Notes under the pieces: model-generated
The model's database searches: none
Told to the model about the DNA's origin: nothing
What the model saw: only the letters and a program-made list of their open reading frames with translations
Translations under genes and position numbers: made by a program
In this document: one piece after another, positions 1 through 36,662 of the stretch
Position numbering within the stretch: position 1 is the stretch's first letter
Layout: every line of letters begins with the position of its first letter
Assembly: GCA_038496445.1 (NCBI GenBank)
Contig: JALMLS010000475.1
Location: forward strand, 1-36,662
DNA: 36,662 nt
Direction of reading: 5' to 3'
Source: Trichosphaerium sp. ATCC 40318
Taxonomy: Eukaryota > Protista > Tubulinea

Positions 1-2009
1 ACAGCTACAAATAAAAAAGGTACCTCCAGTAATCTGTGGAACAAGTCATCAAAATCATCTGGATTGGTTATTTTCGAACATAGTTGTTTGAACTTCTGTA
101 ATGTTTTTAAAATATCCGTTAGTTATTATATCATTTGCAAAATCACTATTGATTGAGATAGCTAGATTCTATCAGCGTATATTATGGCAATTATATGGTA
201 GTGCCTGATCCTGTATTTTCTTGAATATGTTATTTTCTACTTTGCATTTTTTATATGCAGTGTTATACCCAACTCGAGCGATGTTATATACTACAACTGC
301 ATCTGCGCTATATGAGTCATTTATTTTACCTAAGAGTGCAGTCTTGCATGAGAAATAGCCACCAAGGCTGTAAACTCCACCAGCAATGTTATTACTACAT
401 TCGCATTAGCTCTGTACGTTCATTATTTTACCTGTAAGTGCAGTCTTGTATTGAGGCGTCTACATTAGCAAGCGCCAGTGTCCCCACCAAAGTTGTTTGT
501 AAATTTAGAATCTGAAATGTGCTCAGTTGATATGTGCTTTGAGATGATTTAATTGCTACACAATTATCTCTAAAAAAACGTGGTACCTACAGATTCCTCC
601 ATAGCCTTTGAACCAAATAAAAAGCTGCTATTCTTTACAATCACGTTCAATTTCCTTCCCCGTAAATATACCCTGTAGCAGTAAGCAACAATTTGTTTTG
701 AAAGCGGCACCTTTGTACACGTGTCCATGTTCGAAGGTCGAATTTTCAACAACTAGTCTAGAGTTTAAAATGCTGACACTTGCTGAGTTTCCTTCAAAAT
801 GTACTCTAAAGAGTTATCAGTAAAACTACAAGTTCAAATGTCCTCCAACCCTTTCAATAACATAGAGCCTCCTTGATTCTGTATTATACTTGTAGTGCGT
901 GTACAGTTGCCGCATTTGTTTCGACGAAAAAGACAGTCCCTACGATAGTACCAGTTAGAATAGACTTATTGTAATGGATAGGGATAAAAAAGAAACGTGA
1001 AACAAAATAACAGTGGTAAAAAAACGCGCTACTGTACGCCTTGTCCCTTTGCTATCAGGGCCTTAAATATTAGTAACGTAGCTGCGGCTAAGAAAAATAA
1101 CGGAAAACTCAACCTTTTCTATGTGATACCAGTTTAAGCCGGTAGCAAATTTTGTTGTAGTATTCCCGCTACAGATTTTCGGAGCTAGCCGGACCACGAC
1201 AAATTAAGCATTCAAAAAAAGCGTAAGCGAATGGTAGTTCTAAGAAACCTACAAGAACAGGCGTAGGTTTGCTACGAATAAAGCCACGTGTTTGGTAAAA
1301 AAAAAAACACTCAATAATTTGCAGTTTTGGCAGGCTGTACCTAATGTCAACGTGCCCACCTTGTATTGTAAGTACCGAAGCGATATCACTGCCATTGTCA
1401 CACTAAAGCGGAGTTTTAATATTGTTAAACTCAGCGTTAATTGTATGTTGTACGTTAAACCGAGGACACGCCATCTGTTGAATTGTAAGGTTTGAGAGTG
1501 TAATATTAACACCAAAAGTCGTTACATTCATAAAGTAATTGGTATCTCCGCCGTCAATAATAGTTTCTAAATCACCGCTTCCTACCACACGTTTTAATAA
1601 CAAAGGCTGGGTAATTTAGTGTTGAGGCAAAACCATAAAACGTACCTTCAATTGTAACGTTGGCCAGATTCAGCGGTTCCCACGTGAGGTTGGTATTGTT
1701 GTCGCCTTGAACAAAACTATTTAATAATTATTGAAAAACTGTTCTATCTTTACCCGCATACACTCCAGCGCCAAGCTTTATCACGTCATCAGATATCGCC
1801 TCAGAAAACAAGGCATATCTCAAGGATTTACATGGGTTCAAATGACTACAGTCGCCATCATCTGTACCTACAATAGTACCGTTAATACACCCTCTGCTGA
1901 ACAAGGAATTAAATTAATCCTTACCGTTGGTGGCCACATGAAGTACTGCGCATTGGTGAAGGGATACCATCACCGCGAAAACGAATAATGAAAAGTAACG
2001 TGTTGCCAT
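1..2009 (-). CDS. Beta-helix ectodomain class C GPCR paralog, copy 1 (5' half only, runs off the window; contains frameshifts)
   Basis: Reverse complement of the 5' half of copy 2: ATG at 2009 (MATRYFSLFVFAVMVSLHQCA signal peptide), same intron positions, GDCSHLNPCKSLRYAL. Several 1-nt deletions between 1 and ~700 relative to copies 2/3 (e.g. gaaggaaattg vs gaaggaaaattg). Confidence 0.8.
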
Positions 2010-2619: not shown

Positions 2620-2668
2620 AAGCTGAAATTCAAAGCTTGCATCGCCTTTCAACTGATATGTCATACTT
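2620..2668 (+). pseudogene. Tiny remnant of the receptor 3' end (coiled-coil tail/stop region)
   Basis: gctgaaattcaaagcttgcatcgcctttcaactgatatgtcatact resembles 30640-30700 with deletions. Confidence 0.55.
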
Positions 2669-3044: not shown

Positions 3045-3359
3045 ACTCGGTTGAAAGGTGGGCATGCAAGGTTTGATTCTCAGCTTGTAACCGTTGATTC
3101 TGGATATCCAATTCTTTAATTTCCTTGTTCGAATCAGAATCATGGATACTGTCCACAGCACCTGTCTACAATATAGGTAACAAAACTACACCCAGTGTAC
3201 TTACTGTTGAGAACTAAGAGGTGTATTGTTACCAAAGAAAATGACATACAACTTAGGCGCAAAGATAACAGCAAGAGTCACTAAAAGAACAAGATTTAGT
3301 AATTACGTTCAAAGTTGTTTGTGATGTACCTGTTGTACTTATCCAAATTTTGCAACTGA
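3045..3359 (-). pseudogene. Receptor fragment: TM7 + C-terminal tail, inverted
   Basis: Reverse complement matches 30347-30680 (IWISTT/intron/TLAVIFAPKLYVIFFGN...LSSQQ/intron/degenerate coiled coil). Confidence 0.8.
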
Positions 3360-3780
3360 TCACGTGCATAAACCTGCACAAATATCTACAGTCAAAAAAG
3401 GAAAATAGCCAATAATGCTGTTTTCTAAACAACTTTTGTAGAATCGCCGAGTCTTTCACTCATGATATTTTCGTACATCAATCCATGTAGCTATTTTTAC
3501 AGTAGCGTACTGTATAGTTTTGCCTTAACTCTAGATTGCATGTTATACAACAATAGTTATGTAGTTATCATAAACGGCACCAACAAATTATACCATTTAG
3601 CTCATTCAATTTTTTTAACATGCCAACACGTAGCTATGGCGGTTCTGGTCCTGAGAGATGTTATTGGTACGCTAGGTATTCTTACGTTTTCACACTAATT
3701 ATCTTTCAAGTCGCTATAACAGCCTTCTCAAAACCACGATTCATGATTGGTACTCCATTCTGTTTAACAATTATGGTAGG

Positions 3781-3970
3781 GAACAATTGTGTAGGGAATA
3801 ATATTAGTTGTTGATTCATATCTTGCAGTCTGTAAGGCTCTGAGTATTTATAATAAATCGCGTTGGTTGGCAGCGGCCATTTATGATATGTTTGTATGGG
3901 CACTGGGATATGCTATCATGTCACCATCACTTCTCAAAAGTGTGAGTGTTCTCTTCTCAATTGCAATTTG
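3781..3970 (+). pseudogene. Receptor fragment: TM5-TM6 exon, degenerate
   Basis: Matches 10115-10323 with deletions and stops (…KALSIYNKSRWLAAAIYDMFVWA…SPSLLKSVSVLFSIAI). Confidence 0.8.
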
Positions 3971-3974
3971 TTCG

Positions 3975-4992
3975 CATGAGAGTGAGCGTATGTATCTGAA
4001 AGATGTTCAATGCATGATTCAGTAGTTCTTAGACAACTCTCGAGATGGATTGTGTGTACTCCAGTTAGAGCTTCAACACCTTAGCTGATGCTAATGTAAC
4101 TGTCAGGTCTATTGTGTGTACTCCAGCTAAAGCTGATACCCACATCTGTAATACCAAAACAATACGATGCATTCAGCTCATGAACACCGCAAACACGGAC
4201 CCACGTTTTTTCCGAATTTTTCGAAAGAAAAAATTCGAAAAAATAGAATTCGATACAAAAACCGAATGCCTATACCCACCAATGGATCACTATATGTGAG
4301 CGAAGGTCGGGTTCTAGTTCCGAGCACAGCGAGGACCCGACCGTAAGTGAACCAGGCGCTTTGTAGTTTAGTGGACTGCCCTAGCTATGCATCTTTCTAC
4401 GAATTCTATTTTTTCGAATTTTTGTTTTCGGAAAATTCGGAAAAAACTATGGCCCCCGCAAACATGCTTTAGTGCTGTGTCTGTGATACGGAAACTGGAA
4501 CTAATGTCAAGATGTTGAACACCAAATGTAGTGTAATTCGCACAAATGCGCTGTAGTGTTTTATGTACAATATGCACAACATCAGCGCGCTATTGATAGC
4601 CACTAAGACGTTGTCTTTCCTCCCATACAATCCGTACTAGCTGCCTAGCTGGTGCACGGTTATTCTAACAAAGATTATTGTGTTTTTGAGAAGAGGACTT
4701 CCTGAAAGACTTGAACAATGTGATGTCGATTCAACAAGATATGACCATGTCCAACACGATACCGTTTACCGTTGGATAATACTCTACAACTTTGAGAGAC
4801 GCTAAATTGATCGGAACCATCCACGAACTCAAGTAAATGAGCAAGTATCTCCATTGGTACGTCTAACAACTCAATTGTCAATACTAATAGATTCACTAAT
4901 GCTGCGATGGTCCTCTGGCTTCCTTTCCGTTTATATTTACTGTTGCGATTTACATAATCACAGTAAGTTTGGCGCTCAGTTCTTCGTGACAA
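3975..4992 (-). pseudogene. F-box / leucine-rich-repeat protein pseudogene, interrupted by a MITE
   Basis: F-box-like LLDVPMEILAHLLEFVDGSDQFSVSQSCRVL; LRRs GVQHLDISSSFRITDTALKHV, CGVHELNASYCFGITDVGI, GVHTIDL, GVHTIHLESC; frameshifts and stops. Confidence 0.75.
4196..4455. mobile_element. Mutator-like (MULE) MITE, ~260 bp
   Basis: ~55-bp imperfect TIRs (gttttttccgaattttYcgaaa…aaaattcgaaaaaatagaattcg); perfect 9-bp TSD ccgcaaaca at 4187-4195 and 4456-4464. Removing the element plus one TSD restores the LRR frame KHVCGVHELN. Confidence 0.85.
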
Positions 4993-5864: not shown

Positions 5865-8800
5865 ATGGCAACACGTTACTTTTCATTATTCGTTTTCGCG
5901 GTGATGGTATCCCTTCACCAATGCGCAGTACTTCATGTGGCCACCAACGGTAAGGATTAATTTAATTCCTTGTTCAGCAGAGGGTGTATTAACGGTACTA
6001 TTGTAGGTATAGATGATGGCGACTGTAGTCGTTTGAACCCATGTAAATCCTTGAGATATGCCTTGTTTTCTGAGGCGATATCTGATGACGTGATAAAGCT
6101 TAGCGCTGGAGTGTATGCGGGTACGACAGAACAGTTTTCAACAATTATTAAATAGTTTTGTTCAAGGCGACAACAATACCAAGCTCACGTGGGAACCGCT
6201 GAATCTGTCCAAAATTACGATTGAAGGTACGTTTATGGTTTTAGCTCAACGCACTAAATCACTAAGCTTTTGTTATTAAAACGTGTGATAGGAAGCGGTG
6301 ATTTAGAAACTATTATTGACGGTGAAGATACCAATTACTTTATGAATGTAACGACTTTTGGTACTAATATTACACTCTCAAACCTTGTAATTCAACAGAT
6401 GGAGTGTCCTCGGTTTAACGTACAACATACAATTACCGCTGAGTTTAACAATATTAAAACCCTCTTTAGTGTGACGACGACTATGATATCGCTTCGGTAG
6501 TTCAAATACGAGGTGGGCACGTTGACATTAGGTACAGCCTGCAAACAATTAAGCTCTTGTTTTTGTCTTTTTTGAGGAATTATTTGGTTTGAGTAGTTAC
6601 TGTTATTGTCTGTTTCATTCAAGTTTTGAGACAGACTGACTTTTAGCAAAAAAAATCCAGTTTCTGCCCGATCTGTCAGATCTGACGGATTTGACACAAA
6701 TTGTCATTTTTTTAAATGTGATCTACCCTCACGCCTGTCCAACCGTTTCAAACCCACGCGATTTAACAAACCCAGAGCAAACTTTTTATTTACATATTTG
6801 ACGCCTAGCGTTTACAAAGCCTACAGCAACGCTGGTGGTGTTTTGGGGCGGTTTTGACGTTGTTACACCTTCATTGCTGCTTGGATGCTACCATAGCGCT
6901 TCTGTTAGCGTGGGGTAGGCGCTAGCGTAGCGCTAGTAAGTTATACACGTACGTTGATTTTTTGAAGCAAAACATACAGCAAACAGTGTTTGAGGCATTC
7001 ATACCGTGTTTGGCGGTAATGCGATAGCTTTGTAGGACATCATACCTTTTTAATTCGCTTTTAGCGCATTGAACACCTCTGTGGTTTGATCGTACCGTGT
7101 ACAGTTGGCGTAGGTAAAATACTGCGATCATCTTCCATGGTCTGTTGAAACTTACATTGAAAATTTTGCTATCACTTACCGTAAGGTACCTAAGTCATAC
7201 AATGAAGGACAACATTGTAGCACAAATAGTTCACATTGTGATAGATCTACACCATTTGACAGAAGTGTCAGATCTTGCTAGATCTGCTAAAAGTGCTAAA
7301 AACTCACTTTCTAGAAAATATTAGTAAAACTTGAATGAGACAGACAATATTGCGTTTTTTCACGTGTATTTCTCGTAGAGACATTTTTTTTCATCCTACT
7401 CTAGTATCCATCACAATAAGTCTATTCTAACTGGTACTATTGTAGGGACTGTGTTTTTCGTCAAAACAAATGCGGCAACTGTACATACTTTCACACAAGC
7501 ATAGTACAAAATCAAGGAGGCTCCATGTTATTGAAAGGGTTGGAGGACATTTGAACTTGTAGTTTTACTGATAACTCTTTAGAGTACATTTTGAAGGAAA
7601 CTCAGCAAGTGTCAGCATTTTAAACTCTAGACTAGTTGTTGAAAATTCGACCTTCGAACATGGACACGCGTACAAAGGTGCCGCTTTCAAAACAAATTGT
7701 TGCTTACTGCTACAGGGTATATTTACGGGGAAGGAAAATTGAACGTGATTGTAAAGAATAGCAGCTTTTTATTTGGTTCAAATGGCTATGGAGGAGGCGT
7801 CTGTAGGTTACCACGTTTTTTTAGAGTTAATTGTGTCTAGCAATTATATCATCTCAAAGCCACATATCAACTGCGCACATTTCAGATTCTAAATTTACAA
7901 ACAACTTTGGTGGGACACTGGCGCTTGCTAATGTAGACGCCTCAATACAAGACTGCACTTTCAGGTAAAATAAATGAACGTACAGTGCTAATGCGATTGT
8001 AGTAATAACATTGCTGGTGGAGTTTACAGCCTTGGTGGCTATTTCTCAATGCAAGACTGCACTCTTAGGTAAAATAAATGATCTATAGCGCTGATGCAGT
8101 TGTAGTAATAACATCGCTCGAGTTGGAGTACTAACACTGCATATAAAAAATGCTAAAGTAGAAAATAACATATTCAAGAACAATACTGGATCAGGCACTA
8201 CCATATATTGCCATAATATACGCTGATAGAATCTAGCTATCTCAATCAATAGTGATTTTGCAAATGATTTAATAACTAACGGATATTTTAAAAACATTAC
8301 AGAAGTTTCAAACAATATGTTCGAAAATACCAATCCAGATGATTTTGATGACTTGTTCCCACAGATTACTGGAGGTACCTTTTTCTATTTGTAGCTGTAT
8401 TAATGACATATCACTCAGGTAATGCGTTTAGCACACTGCGTGTAGCACAGGTTTGGATCAAAGAGCAATCAGACACTGTTGAACATCTGGTCATAGAAAA
8501 CGGCTTTTTGAATTTTTCAAAGGATGGAGTGTTGGAAGTGTATTCGAGTTTTAATGCTGAAAGTGGACGAATTTATGTACTGTTGTTGAAACAAAAACAA
8601 TGCACTGTTTAACTCGTAAATTTAGGGAACGTCTTCTAACCTTGAGAAACAGCTCATACTCAAACGCAATTGCACCTCCTCAGTTACTGGCACAATGTTT
8701 GACTCCATAGGAATAGAAAACAAAGGTACATGTCTTAGTTGAAAGATCACGTGATTAACCTTATAAAAATAGGATCAATGAGCTTACATACTTTATTATT

Positions 8801-10672
8801 AAGTAGCATAATATATATTCCTCATACTACTATTGTTAACCTCGAATATGCTACTTTTAGAATTGCACCAGAGATGTTTGTTCATGGGCAAGAAAGTCAT
8901 TTGAAAATGCTTCAAAACTCGACATTAGTTGTTGAAGTAAGTGTATGGTTGTGTCAACTTGCTTACGGATGTGTAGGGACGTGTAGGTCTAAAATCTACA
9001 AATGTTATTATTAGCCCTCAAAGTAGGTTCAGTATTATTTTGGGCAAGTCTTATTTGGCCATCACTGAATCAAATATTACTATTCGTAAGTTTGTAATTG
9101 TTTACAGCCTTTCGATTAATGTGTGTTTAGTGGGTACACTGTTCATATCAATACCTGGTTCAACACATGTTCGACCGTTTGACATGTTCCCTTTGATTGA
9201 ATTCTCTCAAGGGTCAAGTGTTATATTCAATGGAACCATGGTTGTTGACCACCAGTACAGTACTTTTCCATTTTCGACAGCATTAGTGTTTTCAAATAGT
9301 TCCATGTCAATTCAGATGGTGGAAAGAGAACAAACCTTAAGAGTTTGGAGGTGGAGTGATGCTACAACTATAATAGGAATATCAGTTGGGTGCTTTGGAT
9401 TGCTTTTAACTCTGTTTGTAGTCACTGTTGTATTATACTTTTGGTATGTCATTTTCAACAACACTAACTAACGGTTGAATAGGAAATCTTCACCAATATT
9501 GAGGGCATCAACACCAGAACTACTTGTGGTTATCCTCGTTGGTATCTGCTTGTTGTATTGTGGCACAATTGTTTGGTATGGCAGTAGTACTATGAAGTTT
9601 GTCTACTAAAACTAACTCAATAAAGGACTGCTCCTATATCTGATGTTATCTGTGAGTTGCGGATATGGATTCCATTGATGGGATTTATTACTACTATGGC
9701 GTACGCTTTATTTCAGTACAACTACAATAGTTTGAACTACTAATCACAACTTTAAGGCCGCTTGTGGCGAAAACTTACAGAATTCACAGAATATTTAACA
9801 CCCTCAATAAATGTCCAACTCATGTTGTTGCAGTGCCTCTAATAGATGTGGTTAACCTAACAGCTGCATTAATTTGCGGTCAAATAGTATCCTTATGCCA
9901 TGCCATTGTTTGTTTTGTTACTTGTTTATCCTTAAACTTGGTAAGATTGCTTTAATTGTGTGGTCGGCAATGTCTCCAAACCGAATTGGTTACACACCAG
10001 ATCCAAACAATAGCAACTTTAAACTTGGACACTGTGAGAGTAGATATGCTAGTGTATTTTTGATTATCACTATCCTCTACAATGTACACACACTATTGGT
10101 ACTTTATTCTGCTTAACAATTGTGTAGGGAATAATATTGATTGTTGGTTCATATCTTGCATTCGCTGTCCGTAAGGCTCCAAGTATTTATAATGAATCAC
10201 GTTGGTTGGGAGCAGCTATTTATGATATGTTTGTATGGGCGCTGATACTTGTTGGTTTGGGATACGCCATCACGTCACCATCACTTCTCAAAAGTGTGAG
10301 TATTCTATTCTCAATTGCAATTTGGATAAGTACAACAGGTATAGCACAAACAACTTTGGACCTAATTACTAAATCTTGTTCTGTAGTGACTCTTGTTGTT
10401 ATCTTTGCGCCTAAGTTGTATGTCATTTTATTTGGCAATGACGTACCTCTCAGTTCTCAACAGTAAGTACACTATGTGCTCATTTATGAGCTAATGATGT
10501 TAGGCAACATTCGCTTGATTTCGGTGGTTTGAACATCCGCAAAGAACCTGATTTGAAGAAGAAAATTAAAAAACTGGAGGCCGAGAATCAAAGTTTACAA
10601 ACCGAAAACCTAAGTTTACAAACTGAAAATGAAAGCTTGCATGCTCGCCTTTCAACAAGTAATACCAATTGA
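5865..10672 (+). CDS. Class C (GABA-B/Grl-like) GPCR with N-terminal pectin-lyase/Pmp-like beta-helix ectodomain, copy 2 (~24 exons, roughly 900-950 aa)
   Basis: Manual splicing gives an open frame: signal peptide; VATNG-DDGDCSRLNPCKSLRYAL..DVIKLSAGVY; FxxN/GG repeats; 7TM motifs KSSPILRASTPELL, CELRIW..GF, AKTYRIHRIF, RKAPSIYNESR, IFAPK; coiled coil KIKKLEAENQSLQTENLSLQTENESL; TGA at 10670-10672. Confidence 0.88.
6606..7347. mobile_element. Non-autonomous TIR element (742 bp, TA target duplication; Tc1/mariner-type behaviour) inside intron 5 of copy 2
   Basis: 22-bp TIR TTGTCTGT(T/C)TCATTCAAGTTTT with one mismatch; TA at 6604-6605 and 7348-7349. The empty site tgtTAttgcg is present in copy 3 at ~19955-19964. 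Confidence 0.9.
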
Positions 10673-19218: not shown

Positions 19219-22200
19219 ATGGCAACACGTTACTTTCCATTATTCATATTAGCGGCAATGGTATCTCTTCACCAATGTGCAGTACTTCATGTGGCCACCA
19301 ACGGTAAGGATTAATTTAATTCCTTGTTCAGCAGAGGGTGTATTAACGGTACTATTGTAGGTATAGATGATGGCGACTGTAGTCGTTTGAACCCATGTAA
19401 ATCCTTGAGATATGCCTTGTTTTCTGAGGCGATATCTGATGACGTGATAAAGCTTGGCGCTGGAGTGTATGCGGGTACGACAGAACAGTTTTCAATAAGT
19501 ATTGAATAGTTTTGTACAAGGCTACAGTAATACCAACCTCACGTGGGGTGTTCTGAATCTGTCCAAAATTACGATTGAAGGTACGTTTATGGTTTTAGCT
19601 CAACGCACTAAATCACTAAGCTTTTGTTATTAAAACGCGTGGTAGGAAGCGGTGATTTAGAAACTATTATTGATGGTGTAGATACCAATTACTTTATGAA
19701 TGTAACGACTTTTGGTATTAATATTACACTCTCAAACCTTGTAATTCAACAGATGGCGTGTCCTCGGTTTAACGTACAACATACAATTACCGCTGAGTTT
19801 AACAATATTAAAACCCTCTTTAGTGTGACGACGACTATGATATCGCTTCGGTAGTTCAAATACGAGGTGGGCACGTTGACATTAGGTACAGCCTGCAAAC
19901 AATTAAGCTCTTGTTTTTGTCTTTTTTGAGGAATTATTTGGTTTGAGTAGTTACTGTTATTGCGTTTTTTCACGTGTATTTCTCGTAGAGACATTTTTTT
20001 TCATCCTACTCTAGTATCCATCACAATAAGTCTATTCTAACTGGTACTATTGTAGGGACTGTCTTTTTCGTCGAAACAAATGCCACAACTACAACGCATG
20101 TTACATACGAACTAGTAACATAATACAAAACCAAGGAGGCTCTATGTTACTGAAAGGGTAGGAGGATATTTGAACTTGTAGTTTTACTGATAACGCTTTA
20201 GAGTACATTTTGAAAGAAATTTAGGCAGCGTTAGCATTATCAACTCATCACTAGTTGTTGAAAGTTCAGTCTTCAAACATGGATCCCGAGGTGCCGCTTC
20301 CAAAACAAATTGTTGCTTACTGCTACAGGGTATATTTACGGGGAAGGAAAATTGAACGTGATTGTAAAGAATAGCAGCTTTTTATTTGGTTCAAGTGGCT
20401 ATGGAGGAGGCATCTGTAGGTTACCACGTTTTTTTAGAGTTAATTGTGTCTAGCAATTATATCATCTCAAAGCCACATATCAACTGCGCACATTTCAGAT
20501 TCTAAATTTACAAACAACTTTGGTGAGATACTGGTGCTTGCTAATGTAGACGCCTCAATACAAGACTGCACTTTCAGGTAAAATAAATGAACGTACAGTG
20601 CTAATGCGATTGTAGTAATAACATTGCTGGTGGAGTTTACAGCCTTGATGGCTATTTCTCAATGCGAGGCTGCACTCTTAGGTAAAATAAATGATCTATA
20701 GCGCTGATGCAGTTGTAGTAATAACATCGCTCGAGTTGGAGTACTAACACTGCATATAAAAAATGCTAAAGTAGAAAATAACATATTCAAGAACAATACT
20801 GGATCAGGCACTACCATATATTGCCATAATATACGCTGATAGAATCTAGCTATCTCAATCGATAGTGGTTTTGGAAATTACATAGAAACTAACGGATATT
20901 TTAAAAACATTACAGAAGTTTCAAACAATACGTTCGAAAATACCAATCCAGATGATTTTGATGACTTGTTCCCACAGATTACTGGAGGTACCTTTTTCTA
21001 TTTGTAGCTGTATTAATGACATATCACTCAGGTAATGCGTTTAGCACACTGCGTGTAGCACAGGTTTGGATCAAAGAGCAATCAGACACTGTTGAACATC
21101 TGGTCATAGAAAACGGCTTTTTGAATTTTTCAAAGGATGGAGTGTTGGAAGTGTATTCGAGTTTTAATGCTGAAAGTGGACGAATTTATGTACTGTTGTT
21201 GAAACAAAAACAATGCACTGTTTAACTCGTAAATTTAGGGAACGTCTTCTAACCTTGAGAAACAGCTCATACTCAAACGCAATTGCGCCTCCTCAGTTAC
21301 TGGCACAATATTTGACTCCATAGGAATAGAAAACAAAGGTACATGTCTTAGTTGAAAGATCACGTGATTAACCTTATAAAAATAGGATCAATGAGTTTAC
21401 ATACTTTATTATTAAGTAGCATAATATATATTCCTCATACTACTATTGTTAACCTCGAATATGCTACTTTTAGAATTGCACCAGAGATGTTTGTTCATGG
21501 GCAAGAAAGTCATTTGAAAATGCTTCAAAACTCGGCACTAGTTGTTGACGTAAGTGTATGGTTGTATCAACTTGCTTACGAATGTGTAGGGACGTGTAGG
21601 TCTAAAATCTACAAATGTTATTATTAGCCCTCAAAGTAGGTTCAGTATTATTTTGGGCAAGTCTTATTTGGCCATCACTGAATCAAATATTACTATTCGT
21701 AAGTTTGTAATTGTTTACAGCCTTTCGATTAATGTGTGTTTAGTGGGTACACTGTTCATATCAATACCTGCTTCAACACATGTTCGACCGTTTGACATGT
21801 TCCCTTTGATTGAATTCTCTCAAGGGTCAAGTGTTATATTCAATGGAACCATGGTTGTTGACCACCAGTACAGTACTTTTCCATTTTCGACAGCATTTGT
21901 ATTTTCAAATAGTTCTGTGTCAATTCAAATAATGGAAAGAGAACAAACCTTAAGAGTTTGGAGGTGGAGTGATGCTACAACTATAATAGGCATATCAATT
22001 GGGTGCTTTGGATTGCTTTTAACTCTGTTTGTAGTCACTGTTGTATTCTACTTTTGGTATGTTGTTAAAAAATCATATCTTCAAGAGCTCTATCTAACGG
22101 TTGAATAGGAAATCTTCACCAATATTGAGGGCATCAACACCAGAACTACTTGTGGTTATTCTCGTTGGTATCTGCTTGTTGTATTGTGGCACAATTGTTT

Positions 22201-23294
22201 GGTATGGCAGTAGTACTATGAAGTTTGTCTACTAAAACTAACTCAATAAAGGACTGCTCCTATATCTGATGTTATCTGTGAGTTGCGGATATGGATTCCA
22301 TTGATGGGATTTATTACTACTATGGCGTACGCTTTATTTCAGTACAAATACAATAGTTTGAACTACTAATCACAACTTTAAGGCCGCTTGTGGCGAAAAC
22401 TTACAGAATTCACAGAATATTTAACACCCTCAAGAAATGTCCAACTCATGTTGTTGCAGTGCCTCTAATAGATGTTATTAAACTAACAGCTGTATTAATT
22501 TGTGGTCAAATAGTATCCTTATGCCATGCCATTGTTTGTTTTGTTTTTGTTTATCCTTAAACTTGGTAAGATTGCTTTAATTGTGTGGTCGGCAATGTCT
22601 CAAAACCGAATTGGTTACACACCAGATCCAAACAATATCAACTTTAAACTTGCACACTGCGAGAGTAGATATGCTAGTGTATTTCTGATTATCACTATCC
22701 TCTACAATGTACACACACTATTGGTACTTTATTCTGCTTAACAATTGTGTAGGGAATAATATTGATTGTTGGTTCATATCTTGCATTCGCTGTCCGTAAG
22801 GCTCCAAGTATTTATAATGAATCACGTTGGTTGGGAGCAGCTATTTATGATATGTTTGTATGGGCGCTGATACTTGTTGGTTTGGGATACGCCATCACGT
22901 CACCATCACTTCTCAAAAGTGTGAGTATTCTATTCTCAATTGCAATTTGGATAAGTACAACAGGTATAGCACAAACAACTTTGGACCTAATTACTAAATC
23001 TTGTTCTGTAGTGACTCTTGTTGTTATCTTTGCGCCTAAGTTGTATGTCATTTTATTTGGCAATGACGTACCTCTCAGTTCTCAACAGTAAGTACACTAT
23101 GTGCTCATTTATGAGCTAATGATGTTAGGCAACATTCGCTTGATTTCGGTGCTTTGGACACCCTCAATGAGCCTGATTTGAAGAAAATTAAAAAACTGGA
23201 GGCCGAGAATCAAAGCTTACAAACTGAAAACCTAAGTTTACAAACTGAAAATGAAAGCTTGCATGCTCGCCTTTCAACAAGTAATACCAATTGA
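19219..23294 (+). CDS. Beta-helix ectodomain class C GPCR, copy 3 (apparently intact)
   Basis: Same exon structure as copy 2; ATG at 19219, TGA at 23292-23294; the divergent exons I translated stay in frame. Confidence 0.88.
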
Positions 23295-23779: not shown

Positions 23780-24480
23780 TTTTTTTTTCGAAAAATTCAG
23801 AAAGCCACTATCAATGACCAGATGTAACAGTGTCAGAATGCTCTTCAACCCAACTTGAAAACAGTAATAGGTGCAAGGCATTGCCAATAAAATACATTGG
23901 TTGTTTCGATATTGCTTATACAGCACCTCCCAAATTTGAAGCCTTGTTGCTAAAAAACAAGCAATTTGTCACATTTACTGCTCCATTGGCTCCGCTATTA
24001 ATTCCCGCTCTAAGTCCAGCTCCATTCTGTCCGATCTTATTTGTAAATGTACTATAGTATAAACTAACAGCGCTGTCAATGAGCTCCTCCTCGTCGAGAA
24101 ATTCCTGAAGGGTTTATGGCTGTATTATTGAAGAAGATTATATTGTTGCAAAGCACCTTCCCAGCGTCTGTGTATAACCCACCACCTGATGAGGCAGAAT
24201 TACCATCACTTTTCATCGCTATATTGGTACTATGTAGTCCACCTCCATAACCAGCGATATTATTACTACAAATACATAAGCGACACATACTCAATTTTTT
24301 ACCTGAAGTGCAGTTTTGTATCTCAATCTCCACATAAAGAAGCCTCACTCCCCACCATAAGATGTAGCTTTGTTGTGTGCGAATTTAGAACTTGAAATGT
24401 GCACAGTTGATTCGAGCCTTTGAGATGATTCAATTGGTAGAAACTATTAACTCTACAAATTCTTTCAACTTACCTATCAC
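23780..24480 (-). pseudogene. Fragment of a more divergent paralog of the receptor ectodomain
   Basis: SNNIAGYGGGL, GNSASSGGGLY, FFNNTA..RGGA, FFSNKASNLGGAV, then WVEEHSDTV/HLVIDSGFLNFSK matching WIKEQSDTVEHLVIENGFLNFSK; same ctgcacttcag|gtaaa…ttgtag|taataa intron; contains stops. Confidence 0.75.
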
Positions 24481-25897: not shown

Positions 25898-28800
25898 ATG
25901 GCAACACGTTACTTTTCATTATTCGTATTAGCGGTAATGGTATCCCTTCACCAATGTGCAGTACTTCATGTGGCCACCAACGGTAAGGATTAATTTAATT
26001 CCTTGTTCAGCAGAGTGTATTAACGATACTATTGTAGGTACAGATGATGGCGACTGTAGTCGTTTGAACCCATGTAAATCCTTGAGATATGCTTTGTTTT
26101 CTGAGGCGATATCTGGTGACGTGATAAAGCTTGGCGCTGGAGTGTATGCGGGTACGACAGAATAGTTTTCAATAAGTATTGAATAGTTTTGTACAAGGCG
26201 GCAGTAATACCAACCTCACGTGGGGTGTTCTGAATCTGTCCAAAATTACGATTGAAGGTACGTTTATGGTTTTGCCTCAACGCACTAAATCATTAAGCTT
26301 TGTTATTAAAACACGTGGTAGGAAGTGGTACATTAAAAACTATTATTGACGGCGGAGATACCAATTACTTTATGAATATCCAGACGTTTGGTGGTGTTAA
26401 TATTACACTCTCAAACCTTACAATTCAACAGATGGCGTGTCCTCAGTTTAAAGTACAACATACAATTAACGCTGAGTTTAACAATATTAAAACTCCACTT
26501 TAGTGTAACGATGGCAGTGATATCGCTTCAGTACTTACAACACGAGGTGGGCATGTTGACGTTAGGTACAGCCTGCAAAAGCTGCAAATTATTGAGGGTT
26601 TAGTATTGGGGGTTTTTTTTATCAAAACACGTGGCTTTATTCGTAGCAAACCTACGCCTGCTCTTGTAGGTTTCTTAGGGCTACCATGGTAACCCTTCAC
26701 TCATGTTTTTTAATGTGTTCGCTTTGCCGATATTGTTTTTTCTTTTTTGGGAATTATTTGGTTTGAGTAGCTACTGTTATTTTGTTCACGTATATCTCTC
26801 GTCGCTACCTTCTTTTTCATCCTCTAGTATCCATTACTATTCTAACTGGTCTATTGTAGGGACTGTATTTTTCGTCAAAACAAATGCGGCAACTGTACAT
26901 ACACTACATACTTTTACACAAAAAGCCCTATAAGTATAATACAGAATCAAGGAGGCTCTATGTTATTGAAAGGGTAGGAGGACATTTGAACTTGTAGTTT
27001 TACTGATAACTCTTTAGAGTACATTTTGAAGGAAACTCAGCAAGTGTCAGCATTTTAAACTCTAGACTAGTTGTTGAAAATTCGACCTTCGAACATGGAC
27101 ACACGTCCAAAGGTGCCGCTTTCAAAACAAATTGTTGCTGACGGTTGCAGGGCAAATTTATGGCGATGGAACAGTCAATGTGATTGTAAAGAATAGCAGC
27201 TTTTTATTTGGTTCAGCATATGAAGGTGGAGGAATCGGTAGGTTTACCACGTTTTGTTGGAGCTAATTGTTCTAGCAATTAAATCATCTGATGAATCAAC
27301 AGTACACATTTCAGGCTCTAAATTTACAAACAACCAAGCTACATCCTTTGGTGGGGCAGTATCGCTTACTTATGGGGACATCTTAATACAAGACTGCACT
27401 TTCAGGTAAATAAATGAGTGTAGAAAAATAATGAATGAATAGCACTTATGCAGTTGTAGTAATAACATCGCTCATACTGAAGGTGGCGGATTATTCAGCA
27501 GTGTTAGCAATTTCTCAATGAAAGGCTGCACTTTCAGGTAAATAAAAGAGTTTAGAAAATAATGAATGAATAGCACTTATGCAGTTGTAGTAATAACACC
27601 GCTATTGTTAGTGGTGGTGGATTATCCAGTTGGTTTAGTAGCAGTTTCTCAATTAAAGACTGCACTTTCAGGTAAATAAATGAGTGTAAAAAAATAATGA
27701 ATGAATAGCACTTATGCAGTTGTAGTAATAACACCGCTAGTGGTAGTGGTGGTGGATTATCCAGTCGGTTTAGTAACAGTTTCTCAATGAAAGGCTGCAC
27801 TTTCAGGTAAATAAATGAGTGTAAAAAAATAATGAATGAATAGCACTTATGCAGTTGTAGTAATAACACCGCTATTGGTAGTGGTGGTGGATTATTCAGC
27901 AGTTATAGCAATTTCTCAATGAAAGGCTGCACTTTCAGGTAAATAAAAGAGTTTAGAAAATAATGAATGAATAGCACTTATGCAGTTGTAGTAATAACAC
28001 CGCTAGTGGTGGTGGTGGATTAATCAACGAGTATGGCAATTTCTCAACACAAGGCTGCACTTTCAGGTAAACTAATGTGTATAGAAAAAATGAATGAATA
28101 GCTAATGCAGCTGTAGTAATAACATCGCTGATGATAGAGGTGGTGCACTAAGGCTGATAACAAGTAATGTTACAGTAGAAAATAACTTATTCAAGAACAA
28201 TACTGTATCAGGTACTACCATATATATACCATAATATACGCTGATAGAATCTAGCTATCTCAATTAATATCATACCTGGAAATACTAGAATAAATTATGG
28301 TTATTTAAAAAACACTACAGTATCAAACAACACATTCGAAAATACCAATCCAGATGATTTTGATGGCTTGTTCCCACAGATTACTGGAGGTACCTTTTTC
28401 TATTTGTAGCTGTGTTAATGACATATTGTTCAGGTAATGTATTTAGCACATTGCGTATGCCACTGTTTTCAAATTGGATCAAAGAGCAATCAGACACTGT
28501 CGAACATCTGGTAATTGAAAACGGCTTTCTGAATTTTTCGAAGGATGGAGTGTTGGAAGTGTATTCGAGTTTTAATGCTGAAAGTGGACGAATTTATGTA
28601 CAGCGTTCAAACAAAAACGACACGCTGTTTAATCCTTGTAAATTTAGGGAATGTCTTCTAACCTCGAGAAACAGCTCATACTCAAACAGAATTGCACCTC
28701 CTCAGTTTCTGGCATGATAATAGATTCCATAGGAATAGAAAACAAAGGTACATGTCTTAGTTGAAAGGTCACGTGATTAACCTTGTAAAATAGGATCAAT

Positions 28801-30690
28801 GAGCATACATAGTTTATTATTAAGTAGCACAATCTATATCCCTCATACTACTATTGTTACCCTCGAATATGGCACTTTGCGAATTGCACAGGAGATATTT
28901 ATTCATGGGCAAGAAAGTAGTTTGAAAATGCTTCAACACTCGACATTAGCTGTTGACGTAAGTATATTTTAGCTTGCTAAATAACAAATAACTAATAGGG
29001 ACGTGCAAGACTAAAATCTACAGATATTTTTGTTAGCTCTCAAAGTAGGTTCAATATTACACTGGGCAAGTCTTATTTGGCCATCACTGAATCAAATATT
29101 GCTATTCGTAAGTTTGTGATTGTTTACAGCCTTTGATTTATTTTGTTTAGTGGGTACACTGTTCGTATCAATACCTTCAACACAATTTCAACTGTTTGAC
29201 TTGGTCCCTTTGATTGAATTCTCTCAAGGGTCAAGTGTTATATTTAATGGAACCATGATTGTTGACCACAGCACTACTTTTCCATTTTCGACTGCATTAG
29301 TGTTTTCAAATAGTTCCATGTCAATTCAGATTGTAGAAAGAGAACGAACCTTAAGGGTTTGGAGGTGGAGTGATGCTACGACTATAATAGGAATATCAGT
29401 TGGGTGCTTTGGATTGCTTTTAACTCTGTCTGTAGTCACTGTTGTATTATACTTTTGGTATGTCATTAAAATCGTATTTTCTCAACAACACTAACTAACG
29501 TTTGAATAGGAAATCTTCACCAATATTGAGGGCATCAACACCAGAACTACTTGTGGTTATTCTCGTTGGTATCTGCTTGTTGTATTGTGGCACAATTGTT
29601 TGGTATGGCAGTAGTACTATGGAGTTTGTCTACTAAAATTAACACATTAAAGGAGTGCTCCTATATCTGATGTTATCTGTGAGTTGCGGATATGGATTCC
29701 ATTGATGGGATTTATTACTACTATGGCGTACGCTTTATTTCAGTACAACTACAATATGTTTGAACTACTAACCACAACTTTAAGGCCGCTTGTGGCGAAA
29801 ACTTACAGAATTCACAGAATATTTAACACCCTCAAGAAATGTCCAACTCATGTTGTTGCAGTGCCTCTAATAGATGTTGTTAAACTAACAGCTGGATTAA
29901 TAAGCGGTCAAATAGTATCATTATGCCTTGATTTTGTTTGTTTCGCTTTTGTTACTTTTGTTTATCCTTAAACTTGTTAAGGTTGCTTTAATTATGTGGT
30001 CAGTAATGTCTCCAAACCGGCTCAGGCACACAACAGATCCAGGCGATAGCAGCTTTCAAGTTGCGCACTGCAAGAGTAGATATGCTAGCGTATTTCTGAT
30101 TATCACTATTGTCTATAATGTACGCAAGCCATTGGTACTTCATTCTATTAAACAATTGTGGTAGGGAATAATATTGATTGTTGGTTCATATCTTGCGTTT
30201 GCAGTCCGTAAGGCTCCAAGTATTTATAATGAATCACGTTGGTTGGGAGCAGCTATTTATGATATGTTTGTATGGGCGCTGATACTTGTTGGTTTGGGAT
30301 ACGCCATTACGTCACTATCACTTCTCAGGAGTGTCAGTATTCTTTTCTCAGTTGCAATTTGGATAAGTACAACAGGTACATCACAAACAACTTTGAACGT
30401 AATTACTAAATCTTGTCTTTTAGTGACTCTTGCTGTTATCTTTGCGCCAAAGTTGTATGTCATTTTCTTTGGCAATGACGTACCTCTCAGGTCTCAACAG
30501 TACGTACTTTGTGTGTACTCATTTGTGAGTTAATGACGTTAGGCAACATTCGCTTGATTTAGGTGCTTTTGACAGCCGCAAAGAACCTGATTTGAAGAAG
30601 AAGATTAAAAAACTGGAGGTTGAAAATCACAGTTTACAAACTGAAATTCAAAGCTTGCACGCTCGCCTTTCAACTAGTAGTACCAATTGA
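25898..30690 (+). CDS. Beta-helix ectodomain class C GPCR, copy 4, with four extra beta-helix exons (apparently intact)
   Basis: ATG at 25898, TGA at 30688-30690; canonical FTNNQATSFGGAV repeat; ectodomain exons in frame; coiled coil one heptad shorter than in copies 2/3. Confidence 0.88.
27390..28130 (+). repeat. Tandem array of ~130-bp intron+exon units (6 introns, 5 full cassette exons)
   Basis: Introns at 27406-27459, 27538-27590, 27672-27725, 27807-27860, 27939-27991 and 28067-28117; exons of 78, 81, 81, 78 and 75 nt, all phase 2-2. Confidence 0.92.
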
Positions 30691-31347
30691 TATGTGATAC
30701 TTCCTCATTGTTTATGTTAACAATTTGGTTATAAATAAAACCTTGGTCCTCTGACTTTTGTCTTTCGCTCCGTAACACCTAGTGTTTTTCTTCCCCGTAC
30801 AAAGATTTAGAACGTTTATAACTATGTAACAGCACACACGTGCTAATTCATGGCACGTGAATGCAGTAGCAAGGCTTTGACTTGAAATTGCACTCCGTTA
30901 TTTTAGGGTTAAGCTATCTTTTAAAAGACTCACTTTATTAATAACTAGATTTACCAAAAAAATTGAGCAAAGTTTAGCTTTACACCATCCTTTACTTTTA
31001 CCAAGCTGTTTACCATCAACCAACATAAATTAACACTTTAGTTGGCGTGTCTTCCTTTCACATTTTACCATTGATATGTACTGCCCCTTAAGGGCGTATC
31101 GACTAGGAGGAAGCATCATTTTCAAAAGCATGAACAACACGATGCTCTTTGGTGCATCAATATTCTCAGAATTTTTTTGGAATTTACAATTTTATTAATT
31201 TCTTGGCTCAAAAAATAGGCACATACAATAAATGTTTTGCAGAGTTACCTAAACAAACCAAGGGACCCATTTTTTTCCTTCTTTTTACAATAATTCCAAA
31301 AAAAGGGTCTGAAAATTAAATGTTTGTTTTTGGGTTTTGGTTTTTTT

Positions 31348-34300
31348 TTAGTCGTTTCTTGGATCAAAATCATCAAGGTTATCATCATCATCGTCTCCGC
31401 CATCCAATGAAATAAGACTTACATCAGGAGGAGGTCCCTCAATCGAGTCATCATCATCATCATCAAGTAACGGTATAGGTTTATCATCATCATCGTCACC
31501 GAACTCTAATTTCATCGCTAAAAAACTCAAAGTAAGTACCAACAAAAAAACCTCTGCAGTAAGATTATATATCGTACCTGATCCTTCAACAACACTACCT
31601 ACTTCACCTTCAAGTTCAGTGTTCTGTTCTTTATCTTTCATACGTTGAAGCATCTCTACTGTTTCTTCATCCTTACCAAGTTGAACAGCTGGTGTAGGAG
31701 TAGTACAACGACGACAACAGTAGATAGCAGCAGCAATGAAAATCAAGGCACCAATGACAGCACTGATAATCTACAGCAAACAGTTAATTGTCGTTCACTA
31801 ATAAAAAAAGAAACATCCAAAATTTAAAATCACGTACAATAATCCACATGGTCATGCCACCACTAGCGGTTGGCGTGTTAGGCTCAATTGGCGCTTGTGG
31901 AGGTGTAGGCGTTAGTGTTGCGGCAGGAGCAATAGGAGTAGGTGCAACACCTGTTGGTGATGCTGTAGGTACAGGTGGAACAGTACCACTGCGCATGCTA
32001 TAGATGTGTTGACCCTAAAGTAAAAAGTTAAGCGAGAGAAATTCTCAGAAAATAAAATAAACAAAAGTTGTGCTTACCGCTTGGAGAACGAATTCCTTGC
32101 CAGCCTCGCTCTGTATATGATGTGCATCTAAGCTCAACTCGTAGGTGTGCCCTTCCACGAATCCAGTAGATGTAGGTGGTACAAAGAGGAGATGCCATAC
32201 AGTAAAATCATCCTCTCCAGTGAAAGCAGCTGGTACGATCGTAGGTTTGATCTTATGGCTGTGGAGCTCTCTTGATTCAAGAGAAAATGCAGCAACAATA
32301 GTATCATAGTGGGCTCTTCTTGTGATCTGTTCACCGGCTGTCGTGTATGGAGAATTAGAAAGTATAACCTCTAGCGTGATAGGTTCCGTAGGATCGAGTT
32401 GTTCACCTGCTGGAGGAAGAACTTGCTCAATAGTAGGAGTAGCACTTGAGAGAGCTGAAACAGCAATGCTCCTGAAATACAAGTGAGAATGATTGTTAAA
32501 GCGTAGTATTCAACGAAGAAGACCATTGTATGATTTTCGTACCAATAGAATGGGAAGCAAACACGTGGTGTAGTACCCAAGTCCATATTAAAAGAATCTT
32601 GCTTGATATGAACCTTGTATAATCCAGGTGAATACAATTCTTGTCCGATCTCTTGAGTAGTAGTGAACACTCCAGCGCCACTTGTGGCTTCCTCAGAGAA
32701 TAGACCCTTAGGTAAATCCTACAAAAAAAGTCAACTCATGTTAACCAATTATTAAGAAAAAACTGAGAACAGGAAACTTGATTGTTAGACCAACTACTCA
32801 TAGATAATAGATCTACGTACACGCAGGCCACCCTCGAGTTCCAGATAGAAGGCATTGGTCATGCCATTGTAAGATAACTCAACATCAACATGGGACTGTT
32901 CAGTGATATTGAACTCGATGACGTAATCAAAAGTGTCTCCGTTTGTATGTGCAGCTATTATTTCTGGTGTCATAAAGGACTCAACAGTTTCGTTAGCTTG
33001 TCCATTAACCATCTAATTCATAAATCAGTATTGCGTCTCATGAAATAATAATAATAAAGGGCGTACAGTGAGCTGTTGAAGTGGAAGTTTAGAATTAGCT
33101 GGTTGATCCTTACACATTTCAAAATCTACTCTAAATACACTCTCAAGCATTAGATCCATGGCAAAGTAAGGACAAGGACGTGGTCTATTAGCATGGGTCG
33201 TCTAAGAAAGAAAGTCAGCATACTATCCCTCGTAAAAAGGGCAAAAATCAAAAAACAAAAATAGGAAAACGCCAACGTACTGGAACGAGTTCCAAGGTGT
33301 AATTCTTGTTTCCGTTCGGTTCTAAGTAGAAGATAGACAAACGTTGGTAGTGAGCAGTAGTTGTAGTGACAGGTTGAATGACCTCAACACCGCCAGTCGC
33401 ATTGTGAGAAATGATTTTATGCTCAAAGTTTCCGTAAACCTTATGAAGCGAAGTCAAGGCTGTAAATATGCTAGGTGAACGGGCATTGAACAAGATCTGT
33501 TGTGTGAGGTACTCATTACCACGTTGTGGCAAAGCAAAGCTAGGTCCATGAATATGAACAAAGCCATCGATTACAGGCCCGCCAAACTTTTCAGAATGAG
33601 CAGTGCTGCCATCAAAGAGATCCCAAGGTAAGATTTCTTGGTTAAATGCGGTACAGGCTAAAAACGACGAGTCAATATACAAAACTCAAACAAAAAGCAG
33701 ACAAAATCGTACCTCTTCCTTCAGAACCACTGATTGTCAAAGCAAAGAAGAACTCAGGACAGTAACTAATATCTCTTGTGTGCAAGTCATATTGTAAGTT
33801 AATATCCAAAATGTATTCGCCAGCTGGAATAATCTAAAAAAAATCAGAAAAAAAATCATGGTAGGTTTTTGTTTCCAAACATGGGTTGCTGTCGTACCGT
33901 GTTGATTGTGTTTGTATTCCATCCATTTCTTCCAATAACGTCATCAGGTAACTGACCACCATGAAGAGATAGTTGGAATTCACCAAGTAAGAACTCATAT
34001 CCAATCTTAGCAAAGAAAACACTTGATTGCTCTAGAGTGAATGGTAACGACTGAATAGTCACCCAAACCTCATTTGGTTCTGGATTCTTTTCGGCATCAG
34101 CCTTGCTTAGAATCAAAGTCTTGTGTGAGTATGTGTAGTACTAGGTCACAAGTTAATCAAAGATTGTATTGTAATTTTTTCGCAAAGTCATCAGTTTGAA
34201 CAGAAACAAAACACAAAAATAATAAAACTGTGTCATAATCAGGGCCAATGCGTTATCTCACTGCCACAAGACAATAAAGTCAAGTAGTCTAGATCGAGAA

Positions 34301-36662
34301 GCTACTCATCATGGTAGACACAAATAGAAATTGTTTTACACGAAAACCGTAATGGGAAACAGTACGTACGCCTTGAGGTGAAAGATGGATTGGATCTATC
34401 TTATCAGAAGTTGTACGTTGGCTACATGATTTTTGGCTTTCCAATTTACTGATGGTATCAATAACATAGTTCTCAGGAGCCATAGAGATCTCAGTACGAC
34501 CTGTTGTAAGCTAAAAAATAAATGTTAACAAAGAAAATAGCGAATAAAAAAAGAAATAAAAGAATATCTCTCGTACGACATCATTGCCAGCAGTGAAATA
34601 AATGAAGTGGTTGTTTGTATCATTAACAATAGCAACAACATGCAATTTACCAGGAGCTTGGTATGGTACCATAGCAACTCTAGAAAGAGAACATTAACCC
34701 AAAGAAACAGTGTCTAATCAAAAAAAAATACGAACCTAATAACTTCAGGTGGACTTGGAAGTTTGAACTTAATCTTTGATGTTCTTTCACCATTTTCCCA
34801 TGTGATGTAGTCAGACACAACATGAAGCCTCTCAGTAAAGTCGAGATAAGGCAACACATTGAGGTTGGTTGGAATCTTAGGTTGTGTAACAAGAGTACGT
34901 CCATTAGCGTCATAAGGTTCTACGCTCATCTCAAGACGGAAGTGTACACATCCACGAATCTCTGGAATGTTTGCAGCGGCTTCATAGATACCGAGGGTAT
35001 AATCGCCAGCAGCCAATCCCTTGACAGTAAGGATATTACTTGTGAGAGTATTTCTACCAAAGTAAACTTCATTGTCGCTCTCTAAATTATACAAAGTTAG
35101 TAACCATCTTTTTTGAAGAGCACTGTTAACTACGTACCTTTCTTTTTCAACTTGATGAACAAGTCACTGGTTAAAAAGTCATAACCGACAGCAACATAAA
35201 GGTTGAAAGAAGTTTGGAAGCTAACAGAGTATTCCTTGGCAAGTGGAGTCTCAACTTGTGGAAAGTAAGATTTATCACTAAAAAAAAAGTCAGCAACTTG
35301 AAGATTTCTGTACACAAGAATAAAATATAGTGGCAGTACCTAGCGTAGTTATAGATGCTCAAGGTCTTTCTACCAAGAAGAGGTTGTGCCTTGACTTCAG
35401 GGAAGTGAGCAGGAGTTGGAGAGCAGCTAGTAGGCAAGTATCTATTGGAAACAGGTAGTGGCAGAACAGCAACAACCATTGAGAAAGCACTGCAAGGATC
35501 AACAGTGCTAGAATCAAGATGCCAGAACTTAAGAACGATTTTGTACTCATAACCAGGAGAAATCTTTGCAACGAAAGATTCTTCATCGTACAAGTTTCTA
35601 CCGCTAGCGATTCTAGTTCCATTTTGAGTGAGAGATACATCAATATCAACAGTAGATCTATCAACAAAGACACGAATGACAGAAACCGTCTTTACGCTGA
35701 ATTCGATTTGACGTGTAGTCAAAGCAGCTTGATCAACACCATCAGGTACATATAATCTAGTAGTTGATTCAGTACAAAGGTAATCGCTCAACAAAAAAAA
35801 AAACTAAACAACAAAAAAATACCTTAGTGGTACGGTTGAGCGTTTGCTGCCCTTCATGTATCTGATAGTATCAAGGGTCTTTGGTATTTCAACAGCATCT
35901 TCACCAGGACATTTTGGACTCTTCCAGTCGCTTGTGGTGTATGTATTCATCAAGAATGACATATGTCCGCATCTAAAGTTAAAAAGAAAATAAGCAAAAG
36001 AAGTACAACAACAAGAGCGTCGTACCGAGGAAGAACTGGATTACCGAATACATGATGATCAAATTGAGTTATTCTTAACATGTACGTTCTACCAGGGGAC
36101 AAAATTGCAGACAAGTAGTTGTAATTGTACATAGCAACACCGTATGACTCAATAGAAACTAATCAAAAAAAGTTAATATCATCCAAACCTCAAAGAAAAT
36201 ATAAAAATCAAACGTACTATCAGTAGCGTTCTCAGGGTTGACACTGTAGAGCTCAGCACGGAAATTGCTTGTCAAGAAGTCGCTACCAATACCAAATTCG
36301 AAGGCCATATTGCTACCAGTAGTGCTAAAGGTATATTCCTTGATTTGAGGACCTAGTAAAAAAAAATAGTTAAGATAATGATGATTTGCTAATTATGAAA
36401 AAAGTAGTACTTTTAATGAATGTATAGTATTCCACAGTTTCAGTGCCGTTAAAGTACTTGTTGGTACCATACGAGATACCATCAAAGATACTTCTTGAAG
36501 GTAGTTTATCAACAATATTCGTTGGGCAAGGAGCAGATATAAAGTAGTCAGGGTCAAGAGGTGATACAGCCATCTCAAAGGTCATTTCAGGACAGAACTC
36601 ATCTTAAACAAAAAATTAGTAACAAGAAAAAAAAAACAATTTGCTCGCAGCTTCTTGTAAAG
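31348..36662 (-). CDS. Large multi-exon type I membrane protein (5' end outside the window): repeated beta-rich modules, Ig-like domain, Pro/Thr stalk, TM helix, acidic tail
   Basis: Recurring G(Y/S)(D/E)FL, DIDVxL, SPGxxYxLxI, CxxFxxxMxV motifs; TPTIEQVLPPAG…GHTYELSL…IQSEAG (Big_5-like); PTASPTGVAPTP stalk; IISAVIGALIFIAAAIYCCRRC; poly-Asp tail; TAA at 31348. Confidence 0.85.

Follow-up and report, generated by a model that had tools for sequence, protein, structure and literature searches.

A Loop of Variable Length in Exon 6 of Tandem Class C Receptor-Like Genes of Trichosphaerium, Probably One of Several Variable Turns on a Beta-Helix Rod

Introduction

In a group of tandem receptor genes of Trichosphaerium sp. 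ATCC 40318, the sixth exon carries a short loop that differs from copy to copy, and the question raised by the locus is what kind of element this loop is and how its variation arises. The first-pass annotation likened it to an antibody CDR. A comparison of all copies in the genome argues, with moderate confidence, for another reading: the loop would be a surface turn that is enlarged in a single beta-helix rung, part of the rod of a class C receptor resembling Dictyostelium GrlP, GrlQ and GrlR, variable in the germline and kept in frame. A single CDR-like element is at once too narrow and too strong a description: several turns vary in the germline, and this loop is the largest among them.

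The Receptor Genes of the Window

The window, i.e., the whole stretch of DNA analysed, is the complete contig C316 (36.7 kb) of a 70-Mb eukaryotic assembly, with a G+C content of 36-40%, introns of 38-50 nt and genes that lack a human counterpart. Repeat analysis identifies its receptor genes as a tandem family with four copies:

1..2009, minus strand: W1, the 5′ part of the fourth copy, with its ATG at 2009, truncated by the contig start
5865..10672, plus strand: W2, whole gene
19219..23294, plus strand: W3, whole gene
25898..30690, plus strand: W4, whole gene, with a five-exon cassette at 27461-28064 among the predicted beta-helix rungs

Gene models were built by a splice-path search that penalized stops in the aligned paralogs and rewarded conserved GT/AG sites, with manual correction based on the alignment. 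The paralog alignment sets the W2 start codon at 5865 and the exon 2 acceptor at 6006/6007; an exon 2 starting at 5981 was rejected because it gave apparent frameshifts in the alignment, and an extra exon at 6647-6850, proposed by the splice-path search, is false, present in W2 only and located inside the long, variable intron 5. The resulting models of W2, W3 and W4 are open from end to end. A hydrophobic signal peptide is encoded by exon 1. Exons 2-12 supply the predicted beta-helix rungs, about one per exon, and among them is a cassette array whose number of exons varies. A stalk and the first membrane helix follow in exons 13-17, the remainder of the seven-helix domain in exons 18-23 and a coiled coil in the final exon. 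With the signal-peptide exon and exons 2-5 preceding it, the variable stretch is indeed exon 6, as first numbered.

Other features of the genes vary as well. Intron 5, the sole long intron, has about 170 nt in W3 and 914 nt in W2 (6532-7445), the extremes of its range, and the insertions that it holds in one copy are unrelated to those in another. A heptad coiled coil with weak leucine-zipper matches forms the C-terminal tail (10504-10672, 23129-23294 and 30543-30690); it measures 148-169 nt and differs between copies by whole repeats. Two copies are interrupted: in W1 exon 8 (about 645-673, minus strand) a run of A is one nucleotide short, which leads to a stop, and exon 13 of C10c, a copy on the 780-kb contig C10, has 163 nt rather than the expected 164, a single-base frameshift. 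Each is either true pseudogenization or a homopolymer assembly error, and W1 may be a broken gene.

The spacers contain remnants of the family. Between W1 and W2, positions 3049-3968 hold the debris of another member:

3795-3968, plus strand: exon 22 transmembrane fragment with internal deletions
3207-3272 and 3049-3162, minus strand: exon 23- and exon 24-like pieces

This relic, which is also found at C10:185252-185410, is birth-and-death debris. A truncated relic between W3 and W4 (23786-24434, minus strand) combines exon 9-like and exon 13-like pieces and includes an intronless open stretch of 90 aa (24079-24348, minus strand) in which three PMP-type rungs directly follow one another and which scores 24.7 bits against Chlam_PMP, above the threshold; this intronless relic might be a processed copy. 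On the 3′ side of W4, the minus strand of 31348-35794 has several long open reading frames (e.g., 33248-33682 and 35171-35794) that are unrelated to the receptor family and returned no Pfam match; one of them, 31348-31746, encodes acidic runs of D.

A genome-wide DNA search retrieved nine copies of exon 6: in addition to those of the four window genes, C10 has three (C10a, C10b and C10c) and contigs C486 and C394 have one each. The transmembrane exon has about 49 matches in the genome. Distant paralogs on contigs C78 and C114 possess an equivalent of exon 6, with loops of 4, 8, 8 and 10 residues, so that the variable site must be old.

Exon 6 and Its Loop

The exon and its loop are located as follows:

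26860..26973, plus strand: exon 6 of W4, 114 nt, with the AG acceptor, GT donor and open frame conserved in all copies
26888..26935, plus strand: W4 loop, 16 aa (GNCTYTTYFYTKSPIS), between NKC and IIQNQGG
7446..7538, plus strand: exon 6 of W2, 93 nt; loop at 7474-7500, 9 aa
20056..20157, plus strand: exon 6 of W3, 102 nt; loop at 20084-20119, 12 aa, unique sequence
850..939, minus strand: exon 6 of W1, 90 nt; loop at 888-911, 8 aa, same as in C10c
26974..27017, plus strand: intron 6 of W4, 44 nt, 95% identical among copies and adjoining the exon of the unalignable loop

In W4, exon 6 opens with the last base of a split codon and closes with the first two bases of the next one. The four window paralogs differ in loop length as first reported (8, 9, 12 and 16 aa), and the reported translations are exact. 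With the copies from elsewhere in the genome, seven distinct loops rather than four are found among the nine exons, so that exon 6 variability is somewhat stronger than first described. The core lengths are 18, 21, 24, 24, 33, 33 and 45 nt, each divisible by three, and none of the nine copies has a frameshift at the loop, in agreement with the claim that all loops preserve the frame. The flanks of the core (28 nt on the 5′ side and 41 nt on the 3′ side) are 91% identical on average, while the core itself is unalignable; even the only two pairs of equal length are 40% identical, which is near random.

Loops are shared in two cases, between W1 and C10c, whose genes are about 96% identical, and between C10a and C486, whose genes are 99.7% identical. 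Near-identical copies with identical loops indicate that the variation is germline and not somatic; for somatic generation of diversity this is indirect counter-evidence, drawn from the assembled copies.

The composition of the loop is distinctive. Thr makes up 22% of loop residues and Tyr 11%, compared to 8 and 3% in the rest of the ectodomain, and the sequon N-C-T is present in four of the seven distinct loops, including that of W4, which combines it with one Cys. The initial description of the loop as rich in Tyr and aromatics thus holds for Tyr, but enrichment is only weak when all aromatic residues are taken together (p = 0.06), and the loop of W1 contains no aromatic residue. The enrichment of Thr and Tyr together with the recurrent N-C-T makes glycosylation a candidate alternative role for the loop.

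A Probable Beta-Helix Ectodomain on a Seven-Helix Core

Exon 22 alone (W2 10128-10338) scores 34.2 bits against Pfam 7tm_3 (PF00003), above the gathering cut-off of 33.5 (E 2.8e-8, profile positions 174-242), and exon 18 adds a match of 20.2 bits (profile positions 34-62) that is colinear with it. By their predicted peptides, the receptors are members of the class C (7tm_3) seven-helix family. The best solved relatives of the exon 22 peptide, GABA-B1, GPR158 and mGlu, are all class C and match in the TM5-TM6 region, at weak E-values (0.003-0.1). The coiled-coil tail recalls that of the GABA-B receptor; by contrast, the ectodomains of GABA-B, GPR158 and mGlu are entirely unlike those of the receptors described here.

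The ectodomain resembles a different group of proteins. Repeated FxxN and GG(A/G)(I/L/V) motifs build the beta-helix of chlamydial polymorphic membrane proteins (PMPs), surface adhesins that, like the present receptors, form a variable multigene family. Similar motifs recur here, yet chlamydial PMPs are bacterial autotransporters, whereas here the ectodomain is eukaryotic and fused to seven helices. Taken singly, the cassette exons reach 12.5-13.3 bits against Chlam_PMP (PF02415; E 0.1-0.2), below its cut-off of 20.6. Pfam searches with single ectodomain exons gave nothing useful, exon 6 being without a match, and a profile of the rungs matched no solved structure.

The closest counterparts by described architecture are in another amoeba. 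Dictyostelium discoideum GrlP, GrlQ and GrlR are family 3/class C GPCR-like proteins that have long N-termini resembling Chlamydia PMPs and no known ligand (PMC1885808, PMC10445921). They share with the Trichosphaerium receptors a long N-terminal region, here of putative PMP-type repeats, joined to 7tm_3, an amoeba host, lineage-specific amplification and the status of receptors without a known ligand, and the Trichosphaerium family would be GrlP/Q/R-like. One rung per mini-exon, cassette arrays and turns that vary between paralogs, all seen here, are not described in those reports (PMC1885808, PMC10445921). Another Dictyostelium class C GPCR, fAR1/GrlL, binds folate and lipopolysaccharide and drives phagocytosis (PMC5969738); as an amoeba seven-helix receptor that recognizes bacteria, it is a precedent for the prey recognition proposed below, although it uses a Venus-flytrap-type domain in place of a beta-helix.

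Probable Position of the Loop on the Rod

Alignment of the cassette rungs reveals a common motif, NNxA followed after 0-3 residues by GGG and further on by CTF, and ordinary rungs have 0-4 residues between the FxxN-like and GG motifs. Exon 6 has the order DC-x-F-R-x-N-K-C, loop, IIQNQ-GG; set against the cassette alignment, this order places the loop in the FxxN-to-GG turn, where it would replace the short link of other rungs. Besides the cassette rungs, exons 5, 7, 8 and 9 also vary in the length of this link. Equivalent turns of a beta-helix stack, and the variable links would therefore line up as one edge of the rod, from which exon 6 would project most.

The loop may be fastened to the preceding rung through its Cys:

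26504..26565, plus strand: exon 5 of W4, beginning with Cys, followed by a short length-variable turn

The second Cys noted earlier as retained lies inside the loop in all four window copies but is missing in C394. Six distinct copies have both the loop Cys and the first Cys of exon 5, and C394 lacks both; because the two are absent jointly, in what amounts to one event, they are candidates for a disulphide bond between the loop and the preceding rung.

How the Loops Differ Between Copies

The loops of W2, C10b and W4 form one series, related by clean indels of 9, 3 and 9 nt with few substitutions. Those of W1/C10c and C10a/C486 form a second series and are one codon apart, and the W3 and C394 loops lie outside both. 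Alignment of the W3 loop with the others at the DNA level, as a search for compensated frameshifts, was ambiguous. One step in the first series coincides with a repeat:

26896..26911, plus strand: TACATAC direct repeat, two 7-nt copies at 26896 and 26905, period 9

This repeat falls on a 9-nt in-frame insertion in W4 relative to W2 and C10b, and at least one 9-nt loop insertion could plausibly have arisen by a small tandem duplication or by slippage. The suggestion that short repeats drive slippage is thus reasonable for that insertion, with its period of 9, and more speculative for the remaining events; the repeats are modest, and Tandem Repeats Finder reports no tandem repeat in the loop.

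Sequence has also moved between copies. For the greater part of their length W2 and W3 are 97-100% identical, but identity falls to 85% in a patch of about 250 bp that spans exon 6, intron 6 and exon 7. Here the nearest copies to W2 are W4 and C10c, and the number of synonymous and intron changes rises as well. Mosaic identity profiles and raised synonymous and intron changes are together the signature of gene conversion, so that the patch would be a conversion mosaic rather than a site of local hypermutation.

Paralogs or Alleles

The window itself has a relative elsewhere in the assembly. Its ends, 1-4195 and 30973-36662, are colinear with C10:161594-188949 in inverted order, at 95.9% identity over 3.9 kb and, in a match of 5.7 kb that reaches the contig end, at 98.6%. 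Two origins are possible for C316, recent segmental duplication or divergence as a haplotype of the C10 locus; under both, the four copies in the window are paralogs.

It is quite possible, if somewhat short of probable, that part of the apparent paralog diversity is allelic, with C316 an alternative haplotype of C10 and the receptor cluster structurally polymorphic. The colinearity of both ends points this way, as do the correspondence of W1 to C10c and the presence on C486 of a 99.7% identical copy of C10a. The middle of the contig, however, differs, having three full genes and unrelated genes where C10 has two; the copies located there are only 85-91% identical, and recent segmental duplication fits the ends equally well.

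Indels, Diversity and Selection

Exon indel blocks are multiples of three in 26 of 27 cases, compared with 11 of 53 for the short introns and 17 of 68 for the long intron 5, which indicates that the reading frame is under selection; the same counts serve to check the gene models as a whole. The argument from frame preservation to selection on a functional protein is thereby upheld: the region is coding and frame-constrained. The contrast in indels between the loop and the rest of the gene, on which the first-pass annotation made its reading depend, survives by half. In-frame indels occur in 11 of the 13 ectodomain exons outside the cassette, and the six transmembrane exons have none, yet the loop is still the top spot, with 5 of 26 indel events falling in 17 of 537 ectodomain codon columns. 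The Poisson probability of such a cluster is 0.0016 for this single window, while the scan statistic, which allows for any 17-column window, gives P = 0.12; the loop is therefore the most length-variable spot but not overwhelmingly so, and the clustering is suggestive, not decisive.

Comparison with introns gives a larger excess. Introns accumulate indels of multiples of three at about 0.013 per column, so that about 0.7 would be expected in the loop core of about 51 columns; the core has from at least 4 (from its five distinct lengths) to 6 (from gap blocks), about nine times the intron density, in a region that was picked post hoc and in which, being unalignable, gap-block counts depend on the alignment. 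This excess makes the loop a probable indel hotspot beyond simple tolerance, through mutational bias or selection.

Could the variation nevertheless be neutral? A surface turn free of constraint, in a gene family that expanded recently, could be built from slippage-prone, low-complexity codons and drift with its frame preserved; it would carry no adaptive or ligand-related meaning, a reading that we consider possible though doubtful. It accommodates the wide spread of in-frame indels over the ectodomain exons, the scan-statistic result, values of dN/dS below 1 and the single substitution in 24 nt between the W2 and W4 loops, which matches the approximately 4% divergence of the flanks. The excess over introns, however, demands a local mutational bias at the least; in addition, a composition of Thr/Tyr/Ser, Cys and N-x-T is kept across very different loop sequences, and distant paralogs have retained the variable site.

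At the opposite extreme, the loop could be a true CDR-like specificity determinant that touches ligand and evolves under positive diversifying selection, with a different target for each receptor. The loop differs in every distinct copy, the W2 and W3 loops are unrelated in genes that are nearly identical elsewhere, and these exons are more diverse than the adjoining introns: nucleotide diversity (pi) is 0.125-0.18 in exons 5-9 and 0.05-0.07 in introns 4, 6 and 8, an order that is reversed in the transmembrane half. A composition rich in Tyr, Ser and Thr, as in this loop, is typical of binding loops such as those of antibodies. Other turns, however, are equally diverse: mean pairwise difference in windows of 12 codons is 0.61 in exon 9, 0.58 in the exon 6 loop and 0.57 in exon 12, against means of 0.23 for the ectodomain and 0.09 for the transmembrane part. 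The view of the loop as a singular CDR fails on this ground and on the spread of in-frame indels. The unrelated W2 and W3 loops sit in the patch that also has synonymous and intron changes, which argues for an imported or retained old tract and not for local adaptive change. Pairwise Nei-Gojobori estimates of dN/dS are 0.62 for the ectodomain, 0.35 for the transmembrane part and 0.49 for the alignable columns of exon 6; these columns show no direct sign of positive selection and lack the CDR- or VLR-type concentration of variation with dN/dS above 1. Values of 1 or more are confined to exon 5 (1.40) and exon 9 (1.07), each based on few sites. Such a determinant is on these grounds unlikely. 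Antibody CDRs and lamprey VLR inserts share with the exon 6 loop a Tyr/Ser/Thr-rich segment that varies in length and sequence between members on a conserved scaffold, but here the variation is germline, copy by copy, with no sign of assembly or hypermutation in somatic cells, and near-identical copies share loops; the "CDR-like" label is an analogy only.

A broader version extends recognition from the loop to the whole ectodomain. The family would then be a germline class C beta-helix repertoire whose stacked turns form a hypervariable recognition ridge, exon 6 being the largest, diversified by in-frame indels, gain and loss of cassette exons and gene conversion at a haplotype-polymorphic locus. 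Taken as a whole this is rather improbable; if true, it would be a solenoid-based protist analogue of innate immune, prey- or self-recognition receptor families.

Finally, an annotation artefact, with the core an unrecognized mini-intron or the copies decaying pseudogenes, is very improbable: intron sizes approach that of the core and W1 and C10c each carry one frameshift elsewhere, but the core has no conserved GT...AG, excision of the sole W4 candidate introduces a stop and the AG of this candidate is absent from most of the other copies, which led to rejection of a hidden intron, and the threefold periodicity of the seven core lengths and of the exon indels, together with the full open models of W2, W3 and W4, speaks against both forms.

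A Model for the Variable Turns

The preferred reading, an enlarged and germline-variable turn on a GrlP/Q/R-like rod, combines these observations as follows. In exon 6 the FxxN-to-GG link would have grown into a loop of 8-16 residues, rich in Thr, Tyr and Ser, with a Cys and usually an N-x-T sequon. Copies would diverge mainly where codons are rich in A, C and T, through in-frame indels of 3, 9 and 12 nt, of which one or more resemble a tandem duplication, and patchy gene conversion would reshuffle the changes between copies. Only indels in multiples of three would survive because the genes are kept functional. Variable turns also lie at the beginning of exon 5, in exons 9 and 12 and in the cassette rungs, and of this series the exon 6 loop would vary most in length. 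Together the turns probably line one edge of the rod and, because GrlP/Q/R and fAR1 provide precedents, this edge is a candidate binding surface for prey or particles.

Implications

How free-living amoebae distinguish prey, partners and self is largely unknown, and receptors of the GrlP/Q/R type have been without an assigned ligand since they were first described. Variable turns mapped onto a conserved rod provide concrete sites for loop-swap and binding experiments and a marker for population surveys of receptor diversity. Even if the loop proves neutral, it documents how genes that encode predicted beta-helices in mini-exons change length without loss of frame.
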